A stretch of DNA of 64,000 bases from IMGVR_UViG_3300029993_000005:124001-188000, one strand, 5' to 3'; shown: positions 2,144-12,412, counted from the first letter of the stretch. The notes: a model not told the origin generated them from the sequence alone. A program made the numbers and translations.

Positions 2144-3628
2144 ATGTTCACAAATAATAGATTGTTGGGGGTCAATGGAAAGACCATCAACATGAGTCAT
2201 CAGGTGTTTGGTAATAACGGAGCCTCTGTAGCCATGCGTAGTTATAAAGGCCGTGATGATGGCTCAAAAGTAAAGTTGAGTGCCAATGTAGTGGGGAGTA
2301 GTGGCGGTGGTGGAGCCTCTATGTCTGTTAATGGTTTCTGGCAATCTAATTACCAGTACTACATGACAGGGATTATCCCGGCAGACCCCCATCTTATTGA
2401 TACCTCAACGTTAGCTCTGTTCTACAGAGATATTTATATGTTCGATAGTGTCGGCGGGTCAGTAGTTGACATATTGTCGCATTTCCCATTCTCCAGTTGG
2501 GAACTCAGAGGCCTGGATGCTCAAGATTTAAAACCTTTCAATGACGCATTAGAAAGGTTGAATATTCAGACGATGCTACCCTTAATCAGCACCGCCCATT
2601 TAACTGATGGTTTCTTTTGTGGCTCCTTAGTATTCGATCCTAAGTCCAAACAGTTTATAGACACGATGTTGCACGATGCCTTGTCCTGTGCAGTTATTCC
2701 CTCACCGTTCTTTGGAATTGACCCTACGATTAATGTGCGGGTTGGCCAAGCAACACAGCAGTTCATGCACGATACATCAGAATACGCACGTCGATATCTG
2801 CAGCAAATGCCTCATCAGTTTGTCGACATGTTGAAAAGCGGTGCATTTACATTAGATCCAGTGACCACGATGTTTATTCCACGTCGATCCACAACGGATA
2901 GAGCTTATACATCGTTTCTACACCGTATTCTTCCGATGTATTTGATTGAGAAGACTCTGTTTCGTGGAACCTTAGTTGAGACTCAAAGACGTCAACGGGC
3001 AATGACACATTTGACGGCCGGTGACGATACATGGACTCCTACATCAGAAGAATTGAATCAATTGGTACAGTCTTTTCAACAGGCTGAATATGATCCTTTA
3101 GGTGGTTGGATATCTACACGTAACGCAGTGCAAGCAGTTGATCTCAGGCCTGGCGGAGATTTTTTTAAGTTTTCTGATATGGCTGATATATTTGTTCCCT
3201 ATAAGTTAAGGGCTTTAGGTGCCAGTGAATCATTCATGAGTCAGGAAGCCTGTTTGATAGGCTCTACCCAAATTAAACTTCAGAATGGTACGACCACGAG
3301 TATAGAGAGCCTAAGTCCTATCCATGGTCTAGCACCTCATGAACTAAAGAAAGGTCAGTGGTTTCCTCTAAATTTAGAACTACCCAATCGAATTTCGAAT
3401 TCTGCTAAAACTGAAGCTTGGTCATATCAAGGTTATAGGGAAACTTTTACGGTAACCACGGAAGATGGTAAACAAGTCACAGGGACTGAAAATCATCCAT
3501 TTTTTGTTTTATGTGAAGACGGAACTACTAAATGGAAACGTCTAGACGAGCTAAAAGAAGGTGATTTAATTGCGGTAGACGAAGAAGAACAGGAAGTTAA
3601 TAATGCCCAGACCACCGTCAGCAGCTAG
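2144..3628 (+). CDS. Portal protein N-terminal part (N-extein, 369 aa) fused to split intein N-half
   Basis: RBS AGGAC before ATG 2144; portal-like segment ...YKLRALGASESFMSQEA joins TYASQEAGYSLFLE... of ORF 5564; then intein block A CLIGSTQI. Confidence 0.8.
   Translation: MFTNNRLLGVNGKTINMSHQVFGNNGASVAMRSYKGRDDGSKVKLSANVVGSSGGGGASMSVNGFWQSNYQYYMTGIIPADPHLIDTSTLALFYRDIYMFDSVGGSVVDILSHFPFSSWELRGLDAQDLKPFNDALERLNIQTMLPLISTAHLTDGFFCGSLVFDPKSKQFIDTMLHDALSCAVIPSPFFGIDPTINVRVGQATQQFMHDTSEYARRYLQQMPHQFVDMLKSGAFTLDPVTTMFIPRRSTTDRAYTSFLHRILPMYLIEKTLFRGTLVETQRRQRAMTHLTAGDDTWTPTSEELNQLVQSFQQAEYDPLGGWISTRNAVQAVDLRPGGDFFKFSDMADIFVPYKLRALGASESFMSQEACLIGSTQIKLQNGTTTSIESLSPIHGLAPHELKKGQWFPLNLELPNRISNSAKTEAWSYQGYRETFTVTTEDGKQVTGTENHPFFVLCEDGTTKWKRLDELKEGDLIAVDEEEQEVNNAQTTVSS
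3251..3625 (+). mobile_element. Split intein N-half (IntN, 125 aa)
   Basis: Cys1 block A CLIGSTQIKLQNG; block B GKQVTGTENHPFF (TxxH) followed by WKRLDELKEGDLIAV; acidic tail DEEEQE then stop with no blocks F/G. Confidence 0.93.
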
Positions 3629-5564
3629 AATAAAAACTTTAAAATGTTCTTACTGCAATGAAATCATTTCAGAGACTCACGAAATATATAAGACTAGACG
3701 GGACTACGATGAAGCTACAGCTGGACTACGCACTGTGTTTTGCTGTAAAGGGCATAGTGTGTCTTATCGCCATGATAATTTAAGCCCGGAAGATAAATTT
3801 GCATATCATGAAAAGATAGCGACGTCCCGTAAAAATCGTAGTCCTGAAGAGAAACATTTGTCAGGGACTAAACTTAGAGACACCAAAGCTAATTTCTCGG
3901 AGGAGAAAAAAGCAGATATTCGAAGTAGAATCCAGGCAACGGCTAAAGCTAATGATTCCTATGCAAAGGCTGCATTGAAACGTGAGATCACCCTAATTGA
4001 GACTCATGGTCTGGACTACGGCAAGAAACGTCAGGTCAAAGCCCGAGAGACTATGCTGAGGGAGCATGGAATTCCATGCTCCCTAGTTAGCGGTAGTGTT
4101 TTTAGGGCCAAAGCTGAGGCTACAAATGTGGAACTTTATGGTTTTCATAACGCTACAATGAACCCACAAATTGCAGCGAAAACCGTAGCTACTTATACTG
4201 AACGTCATGGCGGTATGGGAAGAGCAAGTCCTAGCGCTAATGCTGAGTATAAGAAAACCATGATAAAAGAATATGGTACTGATCAACCAATGCAAGTTAA
4301 AGAGTTTGTAGACAAGGCTAGGGAAAAGTTTAGGCAAATAGGGCGTCTAAAGTCCAACGCTACTAAAATAAAAAATAATACGACGCCTAAAGAGGTTGCT
4401 TGGAAAGGCCATGCAACTAAAAAACTTAATGGCACGTACACAACTAATAAACAAGAGCAATACATCCTCCACTGTCTTAGATCTTTACTGGGGTGTCAGG
4501 TAGAATACTTGTATAGAGACCACCCGGATTACCCATGGGAAGCTGATTTCTATGATCCCGACTCAGATACTATATTTGAATACCAGGGTTACTTTACACA
4601 TGGTGACGAAGCTTATGACAAAAACAATAAACAGCATAAGCTAAAAGTTGCTGACTTAAGTACAAAAGAAGGCTGGGCTCCAGCTCTGACATTGAAAATA
4701 TGGACTAAACTAGATCCGTTAAAAAGAAAAACTGCTAAAAACAAAAACCTATCTTTTGTAGAGTGGTTTAATATCGAGCAATTTCATGTTTGGTTCTATA
4801 CTCAAATAGCCAAACTGTTTAACGCTAAACATAGCAGGGTCAAGAGTGGATGGTTTAAATTAGCTCCTGACTATTATTTAGCATCCCACTGTGCATTAGC
4901 TAACGTTAGACTTCCGAAAGGTAGAATTATTGTATTTTACCCATGGGACGATTTGAAAAAGCTTTCTCTTATAATTTCGAAAGAAAAAGAAATAATTTAT
5001 GCTAGAAAAACTAAAATATCAATCATAACCAAAGAAACAGCGGATAAATTCTGTGAGAAATATCATATGCAGGGATCCTGCCGAGGAACCGATTTAGCTT
5101 TAGGACTTTATGTTACAACAGCAGAAAATAATAATCGACTAGTTGGAGTCATGACATTTGGGAATCCTCGTTATAACAAGAAATTTGATTATGAACTATT
5201 ACGTTTATGTTTTTCTTCTTTAGTTGTTGGTGGCTCTCAAAAATTGTGGTCCGCAGCTAATAAGTATTTAACAGGTTCAGTAATAAGCTATTGTGATTTA
5301 TCCAAATTTTCTGGGGCTATCTACACTAAATTAGGATTTATCCAGAAAAATAAACCCAAATCTTCAATTGTTTGGTACAACCCGGAATCAGGAATTCGCA
5401 TCACGGATAACCTATTGCGCCAACGAGGATTCGATCAATTAATTGGTAAAAAATTGGGAATCATATATGGCAAGGGTGAATCTAATAATGCACTTATGAA
5501 AAAATATGGTTTTATTCCTGTTCAAGACCAAGGGCAGTCCGTGTACATTACGGAGTTAAAATAA
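3603..5564 (+). CDS. Free-standing endonuclease between the intein halves (Zn repeat, T..E.YG repeats, Vsr-like nuclease, Mom-like GNAT)
   Basis: ADFYDPDSDTIFEYQGYFTHG motif; GNAT-like C-terminus as in 523..2133; overlaps portal-N stop by 26 nt, and its TAA overlaps the next ATG (TAATG). Confidence 0.75.
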   Translation: MPRPPSAARIKTLKCSYCNEIISETHEIYKTRRDYDEATAGLRTVFCCKGHSVSYRHDNLSPEDKFAYHEKIATSRKNRSPEEKHLSGTKLRDTKANFSEEKKADIRSRIQATAKANDSYAKAALKREITLIETHGLDYGKKRQVKARETMLREHGIPCSLVSGSVFRAKAEATNVELYGFHNATMNPQIAAKTVATYTERHGGMGRASPSANAEYKKTMIKEYGTDQPMQVKEFVDKAREKFRQIGRLKSNATKIKNNTTPKEVAWKGHATKKLNGTYTTNKQEQYILHCLRSLLGCQVEYLYRDHPDYPWEADFYDPDSDTIFEYQGYFTHGDEAYDKNNKQHKLKVADLSTKEGWAPALTLKIWTKLDPLKRKTAKNKNLSFVEWFNIEQFHVWFYTQIAKLFNAKHSRVKSGWFKLAPDYYLASHCALANVRLPKGRIIVFYPWDDLKKLSLIISKEKEIIYARKTKISIITKETADKFCEKYHMQGSCRGTDLALGLYVTTAENNNRLVGVMTFGNPRYNKKFDYELLRLCFSSLVVGGSQKLWSAANKYLTGSVISYCDLSKFSGAIYTKLGFIQKNKPKSSIVWYNPESGIRITDNLLRQRGFDQLIGKKLGIIYGKGESNNALMKKYGFIPVQDQGQSVYITELK

Positions 5565-5680
5565 TGAAGTTTGTAAAAATAGTTTCAATTGAGGCCTCTG
5601 GTAAAAACCATGTATATGATATAGCCATGGCTAAAGACGAGGATCCCTCATTTATTGCAAATGGTATTATTGTGCATAAT
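5564..5680 (+). mobile_element. Split intein C-half (IntC, 39 aa)
   Basis: MKFVKIVSIEASGKNHVYDIAMAKDEDPSFIANGIIVHN: block F VYDI, block G terminal HN, followed by +1 Thr (5681-5683). Confidence 0.95.
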
Positions 5681-6469
5681 ACCTATGCCAGCCAAGAAGC
5701 GGGGTATAGCCTATTCTTGGAAACAACTAATAGCTATCGGACAGACTTAACCGAACGTATTTTCAACTCAAAATTATTTCCGTTGATAGCCGTTGTTAAT
5801 AATCTGTATAAAGATCCTAGTAAAGGTAGAGCCAAGGGTGGTCAGCTACTTGATTTTTTGTTTAACAGAAACAATCGTAACAACTTGAAAATGCCACAAC
5901 TTCACTGGCATAAGGAGTTGGAAGCCAAGGGTGAAGACAACATGGCTGAACTCCTGGAATTAGCCTCTGACAAGGGTGTACCTATTCCATTGAAGATGTG
6001 GATGGCTGCTTCCAAAATTGATCCAGAATCATTGTTACGTGACCTATCTGAGGACCAAGCCTTACGCGATAAATTAGCTCAGTACACGGGTAAGGACACT
6101 AGCCATGAGGGTGAGGACGATCATGAGTTCTCTGATGAAGACGATAACGCGCATGATGGTCGGGGTGTAGACGTCAGAGGCTCGGTTCCAGGTGAACGTT
6201 TAACTACTCAACGCCTAAGTCAAATGATTCAAAGTCCACGTGTTCCGCTATTAGCCCGCGAGTTTGGGGACTCTGGTGACTCATGGACCTTCACAAAGAC
6301 GGGTAAGGTCAAACATGTTCCTTCAATAGCTAAGGCTGACCGTAATGCTAAGGCCAATGACACGATATTGAAAATTGCCAAACAGGCGGACAGGGATCCT
6401 CATTATCGTGAAGAATTAAAGAAAAGGAATCAGGCCAAACTCGGGCGTACAAAAGTTAAAGACATGTAA
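5564..6469 (+). CDS. IntC fused to portal protein C-terminal part (C-extein, 262 aa)
   Basis: After HN: TYASQEAGYSLFLETTNSYRTDLTERIFNSKLFPLIA, a portal stem-like helix continuing the N-extein. Confidence 0.8.
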   Translation: MKFVKIVSIEASGKNHVYDIAMAKDEDPSFIANGIIVHNTYASQEAGYSLFLETTNSYRTDLTERIFNSKLFPLIAVVNNLYKDPSKGRAKGGQLLDFLFNRNNRNNLKMPQLHWHKELEAKGEDNMAELLELASDKGVPIPLKMWMAASKIDPESLLRDLSEDQALRDKLAQYTGKDTSHEGEDDHEFSDEDDNAHDGRGVDVRGSVPGERLTTQRLSQMIQSPRVPLLAREFGDSGDSWTFTKTGKVKHVPSIAKADRNAKANDTILKIAKQADRDPHYREELKKRNQAKLGRTKVKDM

Positions 6470-6477
6470 GGACCACT

Positions 6478-6735
6478 ATGTATTCGTTCCTAGTAAAGGA
6501 AGTTCCTGTGTCAGTAAGTCTTGAACCAGAATACCAGTGGTTTACCTATCACGGACGTTCACCCGTTCTAATTAAGTTCCAAGGTAAGTCACTGGCTATT
6601 GGAAAGGGAAAACGTTTTGGTGTTCGGCCCTCGACTTCGGGCACTGAAATTCGTTTAGTTTTTCCCGAGGATAAGTCAAAGGTATTAACCATTAGCAGAG
6701 AACAGGCTGAAAGTTTAGCCAAAGGAGTGAAGTAA
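6478..6735 (+). CDS. Hypothetical phage protein
   Basis: 85-aa ORF, RBS AGGAC, in operon. Confidence 0.6.
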   Translation: MYSFLVKEVPVSVSLEPEYQWFTYHGRSPVLIKFQGKSLAIGKGKRFGVRPSTSGTEIRLVFPEDKSKVLTISREQAESLAKGVK

Positions 6736-7136
6736 TGGACACGCATTCTTCAGAAACCGGGGTCGACATAGAACCCGATAAAGAGTCCACTATTAAATAC
6801 TACGGTATTTTATTTGACGACTATACACCTCCAGTCGAGGGTCAAATTCTCAGGGACTGCTTAGCTCTGCAGAACATTGCGGGGCACTCAGTTGATGAAT
6901 TAGTTATTGTTTGTGAAAGTGAGGCCCCCGATTCTTTACTAAAAGCCTTGGGCTTACGCAGAGTAGGGGACCCATCTTTAACCGATGACTGGATTGTTTA
7001 TCGCACTCAAGAAGAGTGGCCCGAACCTCCTGATAATGCCACAACAGTAACGCAAAGAGACTTGTGGGTACAGCTAGGAAAAGAGAATCTGACGGTCATG
7101 GACGAGCAACATACTAATGGCTACTATTTGCCGCCT
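6735..7136 (+). CDS. Exon 1 of intron-interrupted hypothetical protein (predicted spliced product 165 aa)
   Basis: ORF runs into intron P1/P2; predicted 5' splice site after ...CCG CCT (7136), a codon boundary. Confidence 0.65.
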
Positions 7137-7479
7137 TTTTACCTGGGGCCGCTTAGCAGTAATGTTAAGTGATAAGGTTTTGAATTGCTGGAAACCCCTT
7201 AGAGCTTCTTGAACCACAACGCGTAACCACCAAATGGTTAGATGGTTAGATCGTGAAGGTTTGAAAATCAAGAAGATTGGGCAATCAGCAGCGAAGCTCG
7301 AAAGAGAACGTTCAACGACTAGGCCGTAAGGCCGTACCTACCAAGTGGTGGGGAAGTGGAGCCCTCCTAGAAATTTAGGATGAAGATATAGTCTGAACAT
7401 CTGGTGAAAGCCAGAGCAGCTACTCGATGGTAAGACGAGCAAGCGCCTTTAGCCTAACGAGCTGAGGGGAACATAAATG
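7137..7479 (+). ncRNA. Group I self-splicing intron, subgroup IA2, no internal ORF
   Basis: P AATTGCTGGAAA 7183-7194; Q AATCAGCAG 7283-7291; R GTTCAACGACTA 7310-7321; S AAGATATAGTCT 7383-7394; P2 CTTAGCA-GTAA-TGTTAAG; P7.1 GGCC-GTAA-GGCC; P7.2; P8; P9 with GAAA loop; 3' end GAACATAAATG resembles the T4 td intron end. Confidence 0.9.
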
Positions 7480-9066: not shown

Positions 9067-10332
9067 ATGAGCGGTAATAACAACCAAGGGGTTCCTGGTG
9101 GTCCTCCGGTCGTGCATCAGGTAACAACCATGGAATTTCCGAAAGAGAAACAGTTGGCACTGCAGGCCCGAAGCCAAGCAAAGAATACGTCTACTGCCCA
9201 TTTTCCTAATCAAAAAGGACAACCTGGATACAACAAACCTAATGTTCCAGTAATGCAGCCTGTGGCAAATAGTGAGTTGCAACGTTCGCATCAAGGACCA
9301 AGTCCGGCAGTGATTAATCATCAAGCATTAGTTGATCCAGGACTTCATGGTCTAGCACCAGTACAACGTGCGACACCAGCACCAGCACCAACACCTCTAC
9401 CTGAATCGGATACGAAAGTAGTTAGCCCAGAGTTGCAAGTTGAATCAACGTTGCCTGGATTCAGCACTGCCGTGGCTGATGGTGAATTTGTATCATTGGC
9501 ACTACCTTCGCGTTTTGCCTACTACGGTTTCAAAGATATTTATATCAAGCCCTTTGTGGCCAGACATTTGAGTAAGCTCCAACGGGCACACACAGAACGC
9601 TCACTTTTGCATATGGTAGAAGCTGTGTCTGACGTTATGTACACTTCGGATCCTGCCTATGGTGGTCAACCAATGGCCTTCTATTTGACGTTACCTGATT
9701 TCTTCTTTGCTCTGTATTGGCTGCGTATCAATGGCTTCACCAAGTCTAACTATACTCACACTACGGTCTGTAACAATCAAGACCATATTGATCAGGTAGA
9801 GATTCATGAACAACTTGCTGAGTTTAAGAAGGCTGTGGCGGCCGGAGAAATGACGCCAGAGCGTTATGCTGAACTCGAAGCACAGGCCAAGGCCCCAGAA
9901 ACACTGAAGATTAGTGAACTGATTCGCAACACTAATATTAAGGTTCGTCAGTTGGAGACCATTCCAGATCCGGAGGTCTTCCACTTCAGTGATACATCAG
10001 ATATGTACTTTAGACCACCAACCATGAAAGACGTGTTGGAAATGGCTGACCATCCTGACATGCGAGACAAGGATAAGCGTGTGGAGTTTGGATTCCTATC
10101 TGGTCTGGCCTCACACATCCAACATCGGGAATACGTATTGACCTTGGACCAAAGGCTATCTATTGTCGGTGAAGCATCTATGGACCAAGTGCAATTGATA
10201 AAAGATTTTGAAGAAGAACTCGCCCATTATGGCGTCGTCGAAACGGTAACTGTTACTTGCAAAGGGTGTGGCGCATCGAGGGTAAGCAAACTTACTCTCG
10301 GTGCGCACTCATTTCTTCCCCCTTACAAGTGA
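9067..10332 (+). CDS. Baseplate hub / tail assembly chaperone (T4 gp26-like)
   Basis: LALPSRFAYY...IKPF, C-terminal CKGCG Zn motif, position before tape-measure-like genes. Confidence 0.55.
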   Translation: MSGNNNQGVPGGPPVVHQVTTMEFPKEKQLALQARSQAKNTSTAHFPNQKGQPGYNKPNVPVMQPVANSELQRSHQGPSPAVINHQALVDPGLHGLAPVQRATPAPAPTPLPESDTKVVSPELQVESTLPGFSTAVADGEFVSLALPSRFAYYGFKDIYIKPFVARHLSKLQRAHTERSLLHMVEAVSDVMYTSDPAYGGQPMAFYLTLPDFFFALYWLRINGFTKSNYTHTTVCNNQDHIDQVEIHEQLAEFKKAVAAGEMTPERYAELEAQAKAPETLKISELIRNTNIKVRQLETIPDPEVFHFSDTSDMYFRPPTMKDVLEMADHPDMRDKDKRVEFGFLSGLASHIQHREYVLTLDQRLSIVGEASMDQVQLIKDFEEELAHYGVVETVTVTCKGCGASRVSKLTLGAHSFLPPYK

Positions 10333-10342
10333 TAAAGACATA

Positions 10343-10495
10343 ATGGACCGCTACATCTTGTTGGCTTCTGAGTTCAATATTTATCCTCCCGACACAATAC
10401 CTATCTACCGATTGCAACAACTGTCGGAAGCTGCGGCTGCGCGTAGGGACAGACGCATTGAGGCTGCACAACAAGGTCTAGTTTTCACTGGTTAA
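10343..10495 (+). CDS. Small tail assembly chaperone partner (gp51-like position)
   Basis: 50-aa ORF MDRYILLASEFNIYPP... directly after the chaperone. Confidence 0.45.
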   Translation: MDRYILLASEFNIYPPDTIPIYRLQQLSEAAAARRDRRIEAAQQGLVFTG

Positions 10496-10519
10496 TACTT
10501 AAATAGAGGCTGGACGGCT

Positions 10520-12412
10520 ATGCCACAATTCAGATCGGAAACAGAAAGAAAGAAGTGGGATAGCCTTCAAACCAGTGCGGGCGCTAGCTTGGCCAACATC
10601 ATTAAAGGCCAAGCTAGTGCCGCTGATTTTCAGAAAGTAAGTTCAGTGTTAAGTGGACTAAATACCCTGGCCCAGAATGTATTTGACGAGGCGATTAACG
10701 CAGCGTCAGTGCAGGCCCGTGTGTTCCAAGGTTACTATGAACGAGCGGTAGCCGAACGTAAAGTAGGTGACCTAACCGCATTTGAACTGGCGTTAAACGA
10801 AGCCTTGAAAGGTCAGGCCTCAGAATTAATAGAACAAATCCATGATGCAATAACACTGGAGTTGTTTCAACAGTCTGACGTTCTTGAAAAGTCGATGGGT
10901 GGTCGTTTTGATCATCTCCAGGAAATGCTACCTAAAGATGCGCCGTCAGTCAATGACCTGCTCTCAGCTAACGAATTGTTGGCCGAGAGGTTAGAAGCGA
11001 CCGATGATAGGAAGTGGGATGCGCGTCAAGGTGGGCTGGTTGACCGCATCCAGGACATGTTTAAGAGCGTGCTGTCTGACATTGCCGAGCAAGTGCAGAG
11101 GGCAAAGGCTAGACCCCAGTATTCCCAAAAATTGTTGACCCACGATCCTGATTCTGGACGTACCGTTGACATGGATACTGGGGCCTTAGTTAAAGCTCAG
11201 TCTTTAGTCAACGGGGGTCATCAGCTTGTTCCTTACACTGGGGATGATCCACAGCACACTGGAGATATAAACACTCGTGCTTCTTCTGCGTCTTCGATAA
11301 CAAATCAAGCACCACCTGTTATACAGCTATCACAGAAAGCCGAGCACCAGATAACCACAGCCGCCGACAATCAGACTTCGCTCTATAAGCAATTGATGGA
11401 CTTCTTAAAAAATCCATCAGCAAACAAAGGCCGAGGCTCAATGTTTGGTGGCCCAAGTATTCCAGATGCAGCTGAAGAGAATAACGAACAGGATAAGGCA
11501 GATACGTGGTGGCGTTCATTCAAGAACACGATGGGCGACAGTTTTAAAAAGGCAAAGGACTGGAGCAAAGATAATAAGGGCTGGGTAGCTGGGCTAGGTG
11601 ATACCTTAGCCGCAATGATTTTAGACCCAACATTGTTCCAGACTCTGGCTGACGACCTAGAGAAGTATCTGACATGGGACAAGCTCAAAGACGCAGCCGA
11701 GACCAGCTGGAACTACATTAAGAACAACGGTGTAGCCGCAGTAGACTGGGTACTGAAGAAATTAGGTTTAGGAAGCATTGAAGAAGCCAACAAAAATGTG
11801 ACAGAAAAAGGTCCGTTGGCCTCGACTATAGCTGCAGTCAAAGATAAGAATTCCAGTACATTGACCAAGATCGGTAATGCGCTGGTTTCACCTGACGAGC
11901 AGAAATGGATTAAGAAAAACGTTGTTGAGCCGATCACTAATCCTAAATCGACGGATTCAAAGACTGTAGGTCCCCCGAAATCGTCGATGAATGTTAAGTC
12001 TGATGTTAGCAATGCCTATAGTACGGCTTGGAATCTTTTGAAGTCCCCCTTCCAAAGTGATGCACAAGCCAGCAGTTCGTCGACTAGCAATCCAAGCGCA
12101 ATTCCAACGTCTAGTGCTTCGGGAACTGCTGCAAACACGACGGTAAACGGCAATAACAGGTCGACGGTGGTCAATTCAAACCTGACTGTAAGTCCCCCGA
12201 CTACGGGCACCTCATCAGTTCCAGCCAAACCCGTGGTCATGACGCCAGGATCTGCTAATCCAGCACCTGGAACAATGCCACAAACCGCCAATGGATCAAC
12301 AGCTAATAGACCTGCTGCGGGTACTCCACAAATAAGCTTGTCTACATTTGGTTTTACCTCTGGTGTTGACGACAGCTTGGCAATGATGAACACCACGTTC
12401 TTTACTAATTGA
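10520..12412 (+). CDS. Tape-measure-like tail protein
   Basis: Helical N-terminal region, W-spaced repeats, S/T/P-rich tail, position. Confidence 0.45.
   Translation: MPQFRSETERKKWDSLQTSAGASLANIIKGQASAADFQKVSSVLSGLNTLAQNVFDEAINAASVQARVFQGYYERAVAERKVGDLTAFELALNEALKGQASELIEQIHDAITLELFQQSDVLEKSMGGRFDHLQEMLPKDAPSVNDLLSANELLAERLEATDDRKWDARQGGLVDRIQDMFKSVLSDIAEQVQRAKARPQYSQKLLTHDPDSGRTVDMDTGALVKAQSLVNGGHQLVPYTGDDPQHTGDINTRASSASSITNQAPPVIQLSQKAEHQITTAADNQTSLYKQLMDFLKNPSANKGRGSMFGGPSIPDAAEENNEQDKADTWWRSFKNTMGDSFKKAKDWSKDNKGWVAGLGDTLAAMILDPTLFQTLADDLEKYLTWDKLKDAAETSWNYIKNNGVAAVDWVLKKLGLGSIEEANKNVTEKGPLASTIAAVKDKNSSTLTKIGNALVSPDEQKWIKKNVVEPITNPKSTDSKTVGPPKSSMNVKSDVSNAYSTAWNLLKSPFQSDAQASSSSTSNPSAIPTSSASGTAANTTVNGNNRSTVVNSNLTVSPPTTGTSSVPAKPVVMTPGSANPAPGTMPQTANGSTANRPAAGTPQISLSTFGFTSGVDDSLAMMNTTFFTN

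Follow-up and report, generated by a model that had tools for sequence, protein, structure and literature searches.

A putative trans-spliced portal protein encoded by a fractured gene in an uncultivated jumbo phage related to phiRSL1

How can a phage produce a full-length portal protein from a gene that is broken in two by a second gene? The question is raised by positions 2144-6469 of IMGVR_UViG_3300029993_000005:124001-188000, a 64,000-nt stretch of DNA that is designated the window here and from whose first letter all positions are counted. A preliminary description of this DNA had proposed a portal protein encoded in two pieces that are joined by a naturally split intein. We assign a probability of roughly 85% to the reading that a jumbo phage, uncultivated and related to phiRSL1, carries a fractured portal gene here, the product of which is trans-spliced via a split intein. 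The two portal pieces end in complementary halves of a class-1 intein, and the full-length protein would therefore need trans-splicing. Because a free-standing homing-endonuclease gene (HEG) is nested between the intein halves, the locus is what Dassa et al. 2009 (PMC2677866) termed a fractured gene.

The first 6.5 kb of the window hold five open reading frames (ORFs), all on the plus strand, and three of these make up the locus. The first encodes the portal N-extein (369 aa, 2144-3250, matched by phrog_16240) followed by the intein N-half, IntN (125 aa and a stop, 3251-3628, matched by TIGR01445 and PF14890). The first ATG of this ORF lies at 2093 and its stop codon at 3626-3628; since homologues begin with M-F-x-x-N-R-I/L-L-G-V and an AGGA motif precedes 2144, the ATG at 2144, not that at 2093, is the predicted biologically relevant start. 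The second ORF, the 653-aa HEG (3603-5564, matched by PF24308, phrog_3339 and phrog_559), occupies the 1.96-kb gap between the portal pieces, and its frame differs from the one that both pieces share. The third starts at an ATG at 5564, with GGAG 9 nt upstream, and encodes the intein C-half, IntC (39 aa with blocks F and G, 5564-5680, matched by TIGR01443), followed by Thr+1 and the portal C-extein (262 aa and a stop, 5681-6469, matched by phrog_16240). At its 5' end the HEG ORF shares 26 nt with the IntN ORF, and at its 3' end it shares 1 nt with the IntC ATG (TAATG). Shine-Dalgarno-like motifs lie ahead of all three starts, those before the HEG and the IntC piece being AGGA and GGAG, respectively.

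The two intein halves carry the residues expected of a class-1 intein, namely a block A Cys1, a block B T-x-x-H, and a terminal His-Asn followed by Thr+1, and both matched curated profiles above threshold. The features that the preliminary description had listed (Cys1, TENH, an acidic tail, a 39-aa C-half and Thr+1) were all present where it had placed them. The codon for Cys1 (CLIGSTQI) lies at nt 3251, and this residue was invariant in six aligned alleles; TENH forms IntN residues 79-82 and is TDNH in relatives. IntN consists of a core of about 109 aa, a 16-aa acidic tail that includes DEEEQE, and the stop. In IntC, VYDI begins at residue 17 and the half ends in ...IIVHN, with HN at residues 38-39 and the Thr+1 codon at 5681. 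TIGR01445 (intein_Nterm) matched IntN over the full profile with 33.2 bits (cut-off 24.5), TIGR01443 (intein_Cterm) matched IntC with 26.5 bits (cut-off 15.6), and PF14890 matched the N piece with 36.1 bits (gathering cut-off 35.8), the C-terminal 36 positions of this last profile matching the C piece.

Comparison with PDB sequences by phmmer linked IntN to the Mxe GyrA intein (4.6e-7) and also to the CDC21, PI-PfuI, DnaB and DnaE inteins, and IntC was linked to the C-terminal end of the Spl DnaX mini-intein (2e-4). IntC aligned with residues 2-36 of the 36 residues of Npu DnaE IntC, so that the break falls between blocks B and F, the canonical split position. When IntN alone was the query, portal N pieces were the only matches, with no sign of this intein family in other host proteins. 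The assignment of a naturally split class-1 (HINT) intein is strongly supported by these sequence data, and splicing activity is predicted. The top PDB matches of IntN, the designed repeat proteins 'Cake' and 'Bagel', were dismissed as spurious because they involved a short low-complexity stretch.

The two exteins together correspond to a single uninterrupted protein. Against phrog_16240 ('portal protein', 643 positions), the N piece covered positions 27-377 (E 3e-129) and the C piece positions 377-638 (E 5e-61); the uninterrupted homologue L009 matched the same family with E values down to 7e-202. The N-extein is about 70% identical to ORF211 of Ralstonia phage phiRSL1, which is named 'portal protein'. 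Uninterrupted homologues, for which the preliminary description had recommended a search, were found in phiRSL1-type jumbo phages and in most relatives: tblastn located them in phiRSL1, Burkholderia phages BcepSauron, BcepSaruman and BCSR5, and Achromobacter phage Motura, with more distant homologues in PaBG and Erwinia/Dickeya jumbo phages. Aligned together with 13 uninterrupted portals, the two exteins took up columns 17-398 (N-extein) and 399-723 (C-extein), with no residue missing or duplicated. The junction ...SESFMSQEA / TYASQEAGYS... aligned exactly with ...SEALLSGDA SFASAESAYS... of phiRSL1, other homologues reading SYASAESAYS. The predicted spliced product is thus continuous and colinear with its homologues, and its length (369 + 262 = 631 aa) agrees with the roughly 631 aa that had been proposed. 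With the curated intein profiles passed and the exteins abutting exactly, the claim of a portal in two pieces joined by split intein halves stood, the agreement being much stronger than chance would give.

The exteins retained 140 of the 144 columns that are invariant among the 13 portals. Given this retention and their colinearity, they resemble a gene under full purifying selection. The residues directly beside the intein (3221-3250 and 5681-5716) are unusually diverged, reading ...SQEA / TYASQEAG where the consensus is ...SGDA / SYASAESA. The intein interrupts a stretch that is among the most conserved of the portal, directly ahead of a predicted helix of about 38 residues. From general knowledge of the portal fold, we would guess that this site is in the channel (tunnel) loop that precedes the long wing helix.

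These observations bear on whether the gene is alive at all. The locus could be a dead gene, part of a defective phage or an assembly chimera, with a functional portal encoded elsewhere in the 230-kb genome, and the data are indeed metagenomic and the window shows 64 kb of about 230 kb. No second portal copy was found within the 64-kb window. Besides the retained invariant positions, all three ORFs are intact and full length compared with those of relatives, and the layout recurs in at least four divergent phages, between the MmcB-like and tail-tube genes. The DNA of the window is identical over up to 11.6 kb in four independently assembled IMG/VR contigs from four samples, one of which is 230 kb long. 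An assembly artefact, which the preliminary description had named as a possible undoing of its proposal, is contradicted by this identity and by the conserved layout, and we consider a dead or chimeric gene extremely improbable. No match to the locus was found by megablast among 50,697 phage records.

Relatives of the window phage provided a series of alleles at the same site. The same three-gene layout was present at the syntenic position in four divergent relatives (L029/L030, L031, L032 and the P0009 contig); in each, a DUF7487 endonuclease of 461-736 aa separates an N piece, which bears an intein domain, from a C piece. Between split loci, identities were 45-71% for the exteins, 53-61% for IntN, 67-79% for IntC and 44-53% for the HEG; the window IntN is 53-61% identical to those of L030, L031 and L032. 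Cys1, T-x-N-H and H-N-Ser/Thr+1 were invariant across the split loci, and in five of five the stop codon of the HEG directly adjoins the IntC ATG or overlaps with it. Thr at the +1 position was seen in the window phage only, all other alleles having Ser. In a search with the C piece, for which a length filter set full-length portals aside, at least 11 protein clusters (44-62% identical) opened with Met followed by IntC, with the pattern M-x-F-V-x-I-x-S-I...H-V-Y-D...D-P-S-F-I/V-A-N...V-H-N. Where the split alleles have the Met start, the contiguous inteins of this site carry Arg or Thr. The database proteins in these clusters carry no functional name.

Most relatives (L001-L004, L009-L025 and L027) have an empty site. 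L026 encodes a contiguous 1113-aa ORF with a 498-aa intein (9075-10568) at the same portal codon; its insert of about 360 aa lies exactly at the break point of the split alleles and shows LAGLIDADG-like motifs, which were read by eye and not from a profile scan. L028 encodes a contiguous 748-aa ORF with a 134-aa mini-intein (9075-9476), again at the same codon. In L029/L030 an intein of the same split family (5233-5565 and 7001-7117) lies six codons downstream of the usual site (...SFASAE / C...HN / SAYSTF...), which suggests an ectopic move inside the same conserved segment. In a maximum-likelihood tree of the exteins, the split alleles were scattered beside intein-less sisters: L029 was sister to phiRSL1, the window to the intein-less L009, and L032 to L026/L028, and L031 fell near the Motura clade. 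Such a patchy distribution is as expected for a homing element, or for repeated loss.

Split loci in relatives also differ from the window at the junction between IntN and the HEG. In L030, L031 and L032, spacers of 53-112 nt precede the endonuclease gene and contain inverted repeats of 12-14 nt (L030 5579-5610; L031 4978-5043; L032 4707-4771), and all three frames of the L031 spacer contain stops. The 16-residue IntN tail of the window, DEEEQEVNNAQTTVSS (3578-3625), is located where relatives have the stop and the spacer, and is unique to the window phage; IntN of the relatives ends right after ...VAVxD. The tail has apparently arisen because the stop and spacer were lost, such that the IntN ORF now enters the endonuclease ORF.

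The interruption might instead be removed at the RNA level or during translation (by a group I or group II intron, bypass or a double frameshift), after which a contiguous precursor would splice in cis. Phage HEGs are often carried in group I introns, and the window does contain a genuine group I intron, only 1.5 kb further downstream. No Rfam match (E<=1) was found, however, in 3251-5680 or in the L030, L031 and L032 loci, under conditions in which the neighbouring intron was detected at E 5e-20, and the interval 3251-5680 is wholly protein-coding, so that there is no room for a ribozyme core. A Met start with a Shine-Dalgarno motif at IntC and a stop after IntN are conserved in all split alleles, and the stops in every frame of the L031 spacer likewise count against this reading. 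Known translational bypasses span tens of nucleotides, compared to about 1,900 nt here (PMC2677866). Removal before protein synthesis is complete is therefore regarded as highly improbable.

It is also conceivable that the portal pieces act without covalent joining and that the intein halves serve only as a non-covalent dimerization handle. Intein-less genes fractured by HEGs whose products assemble non-covalently are documented, e.g. Aeh1 NrdA (PMC2677866; see also PMC3045599). A mere handle would not account for the invariance of residues that matter only for the chemistry (Cys1, the block B Thr/His, His-Asn and Ser/Thr+1) in halves that are otherwise 53-79% identical, and a retained HINT domain of about 160 residues would be unlikely to be tolerated at a highly conserved segment of 12 subunits. 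Non-covalent association without ligation thus seems very unlikely, and trans-splicing and a spliced portal product remain the predicted outcome.

The preliminary description presented the locus as a bare split intein; the split halves held up, and the nested 653-aa HEG was an element that it had not described. Profile searches placed the HEG in two phage 'homing endonuclease' families, phrog_3339 and phrog_559, and detected DUF7487 helical repeats in it (PF24308, E 4e-12). Over its full length it is 48-51% identical to homologues at 98-99% coverage. An AlphaFold2 model built with 13 homologues had a mean pLDDT of 78. The protein can be divided into an N-terminal Cys/His-rich module, the DUF7487 repeats, a restriction-endonuclease-like, possibly Vsr-like, core at about residues 283-405, and a Mom/GNAT-like region at 466-653. 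Within the core, the segment ...YPWEADFYDP...EYQGYFTHG... has a strand-strand-strand-helix-strand order, as in the restriction-endonuclease-like superfamily. Foldseek against BFVD returned proteins named 'endonuclease-like', 'homing endonuclease' (PA5oct and Campylobacter phages) and 'Restriction_endonuclease_like', together with Vsr, MutH and HJR nuclease names, and against PDB it matched the C-terminal approximately 200 residues to the phage Mu Mom/GNAT fold (8bv8, E 1.9e-7). Pfam gave no GIY-YIG or Vsr match for the HEG, and phmmer and profile searches against PDB sequences gave nothing meaningful.

The Mom-fold domain of the HEG (window 4998-5561, phrog_1384) is the part common to the Campylobacter 'Hef-like' and PA5oct 'homing endonuclease' proteins. 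It is absent from the L029/L030 endonuclease copies.

Taken together, the data are consistent with the following course of events. A class-1 intein would once have been in frame in the portal gene, between ...GDA and SYA..., and would have been broken at the canonical endonuclease-insertion loop by a free-standing HEG. The three co-oriented, overlapping ORFs, encoding portal(1-369)-IntN, the endonuclease and IntC-portal(370-631), are probably expressed from one transcript; scans for sigma-70 promoters and terminators gave fewer sites than shuffled controls and were uninformative. The two precursors would be translated separately, and IntN and IntC would come together as a HINT fold. Cys1 would initiate the N-S acyl shift, transesterification would proceed by attack of Thr+1, and the terminal Asn39 would cyclize, the block B Thr and His also contributing to this class-1 chemistry. 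The intein halves would then be released, leaving a seamless 631-aa portal subunit with the junction ...SQEA-TYASQ.... As for mobility, the endonuclease may cut intein-less portal alleles of co-infecting relatives, with the whole cassette being copied in.

The identity of the host protein calls for caution. The assignment as a portal rests on PHROG and RefSeq names plus synteny and is an annotation-level one. The RefSeq name 'portal' is found in phiRSL1, BcepSauron, Motura, PaBG and Erwinia/Dickeya jumbo phages, and the gene order is terminase, RuvC, ..., MmcB-like gene, portal gene, ..., tail-tube gene. The natural contiguous precursor of L028 was chosen for AlphaFold2 so that no stop would be read through; Foldseek with the resulting model returned intein matches only, with poor TM-scores. 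The portal claim of the preliminary description thus held for PHROG family, RefSeq names and synteny, and found no counterpart among Pfam, NCBIfam or PDB-sequence matches, the AlphaFold2 model being too poor to add to it. Some other conserved protein of the virion or of packaging in phiRSL1-like phages could be the host, and the missing matches to Pfam and NCBIfam portal models and solved portals and the unusable structure model might speak for this. The 'portal protein' annotation of phrog_16240 and the portal names in jumbo phages fit a portal, as do a length of about 630 aa and a location with the terminase/RuvC genes on one side and the tail-tube gene on the other, and a non-portal host appears quite unlikely.

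Several results weigh against a trans-spliced portal with a nested homing endonuclease. A profile of the 13 portals had no match among PDB sequences, and no portal match was found in Pfam (all 13) or NCBIfam (L009). The L028 model had a pLDDT of 46.8; together with its intein-only Foldseek matches, this means that the model neither confirms nor contradicts a portal fold. The nuclease family of the HEG is not established by the sequence comparisons: hhalign of the HEG family against E. coli Vsr was not significant (E 0.08), with D315 and H333 falling on Asp51 and His69. Charge complementarity of the intein halves is weak, though the trend is in the right direction, with net charges of -2 for IntN residues 85-109, -3 for the IntN core, -5 for the tail and +2 for IntC residues 1-15. 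No non-coding spacer or hairpin was found before the endonuclease gene of the window, unlike at the loci of Dassa et al. Finally, translation of the C piece appears to be coupled to that of a selfish gene, a surprising arrangement for a protein of which each virion requires 12 copies.

This apparent coupling, and the fact that 12 of 12 subunits would need ligation, led us to consider that the intein may be more than a parasite that this phage clade tolerates and that the start of procapsid formation may be timed or quality-checked through portal trans-splicing, an idea that we regard as unlikely. Either splicing as such or its redox or temperature sensitivity via Cys1 might exert this control. 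If true, such a checkpoint would explain why the split state has been kept over about 50% sequence divergence. The suggestions in the preliminary description that head assembly is gated in this way, and that the intein halves are orthogonal to existing protein-ligation tools, are speculation.

Upstream of the portal gene lie the MmcB-like gene (1-507) and, between the two, a free-standing paralogue of the homing endonuclease (536 aa, 523-2133), which matched phrog_3339 (E 1e-32) and phrog_559 (E 1e-31) and is 46% identical to the nested HEG over about 400 aa. No equivalent of this paralogue was found in the flanks (up to 8 kb fetched) of the portal genes of intein-less relatives.

Downstream, an ORF-less group I intron interrupts a gene that starts at 6735 (RF00028 match at 7128-7416, 81.4 bits, E 5e-20). 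The intron is inferred to span 7137-7479, ending in G7479, with U7136 joined to C7480. Its removal gives an in-frame ...NGYYLPP-QGRLSPD...LILIWS, which matches the C-termini of the uninterrupted L031/L032 homologues.

The kind of system proposed here is already known. The fractured-gene model of Dassa et al. 2009 was described for gp41-1, gp41-8, NrdJ-1, NrdA-2, IMPDH-1 and terminase (PMC2677866), and the split inteins known from fractured genes are those of gp41, NrdA/J, IMPDH, DnaE, ligase and terminase. Because this family already includes a phage packaging protein, the terminase, the mechanism is not new. Full-text literature searches (split inteins and portal; jumbo-phage portal inteins) found no report of a split portal, and we did not find a portal reported as a host of a fractured gene or split intein. 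The absence of precedent in a portal that the preliminary description had noted therefore holds within the literature searched, with the qualification that contiguous portal inteins are known in actinobacteriophages (bioRxiv 10.1101/2025.01.02.630785). Like these, L026 and L028 carry an intein inside the portal gene, as does the window, and the L026/L028 inteins share its codon and intein family, with IntC 51-68% identical. In both the actinobacteriophages and L026/L028, however, the intein lies in a single ORF and splices in cis, whereas that of the window is divided between two ORFs parted by another gene.

The window resembles the Dassa loci in its phage source, in its three co-oriented ORFs (host N piece with IntN, free-standing endonuclease, and IntC with host C piece), in the break at the canonical endonuclease-insertion site and in an IntC of 39 aa, within the published range of 33-54. 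Relatives L030-L032 share with those loci a short hairpin-bearing spacer before the endonuclease gene. The window differs from them in several respects. Its host is a portal, by annotation, rather than an enzyme of DNA synthesis or repair. Its ORFs overlap by 26 nt and lack a hairpin, instead of being parted by a non-coding spacer of 27-51 nt with a hairpin, and its IntN is 125 aa long compared to the published 88-105, owing to the 16-aa tail. The endonuclease is large (653 aa), combines a restriction-endonuclease-like core with DUF7487 repeats and a Mom/GNAT-like domain, and appears to be neither GIY-YIG nor compact Vsr-like.

The AceL-TerL and GOS terminase split inteins provide another example of naturally split inteins in a phage head-assembly or packaging protein. 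These are split atypically and have either a very short IntN or a long IntC, and the intein of the window differs in being canonically split and in having Cys1. The cyanobacterial DnaE inteins (Npu/Ssp) are, like that of the window, class-1 Cys1 inteins with the same structural split position. Their halves are encoded at distant loci with no endonuclease gene and are followed by Cys+1, whereas the halves of the window lie 1.9 kb apart with an endonuclease between them and Thr+1 (Ser+1 in relatives). The EDxHD/Vsr-like endonucleases (I-Bth0305I and Hef; PMC3239194) are phage proteins that are free-standing or associated with introns or inteins and that combine an N-terminal DNA-binding region with a restriction-endonuclease-like core, as the HEG appears to do. 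The motif ...EADF...EYQGYFTHG... of the HEG aligns to Asp51 and His69 of Vsr in an alignment that is not significant; the HEG differs from this group in having no significant match to Vsr or any PDB chain and in its additional C-terminal Mom-fold domain.

To these systems the locus adds a distribution across a clade and, at one site, a complete series of alleles. If the predicted splicing takes place, the fractured-gene and split-intein phenomenon would extend from nucleotide-metabolism and packaging enzymes to a stoichiometric virion assembly protein. The at least 11 divergent natural IntN/IntC pairs with Ser/Thr+1 are candidates to be screened as orthogonal ligation tools, and the locus points to genes that annotation pipelines at present leave as 'hypothetical protein'. 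The alleles at this one codon, comprising the empty site, a full intein, a mini-intein and a split intein with a nested endonuclease, together with the copy shifted by six codons, illustrate the 2009 gene-breaking model directly and make it testable.

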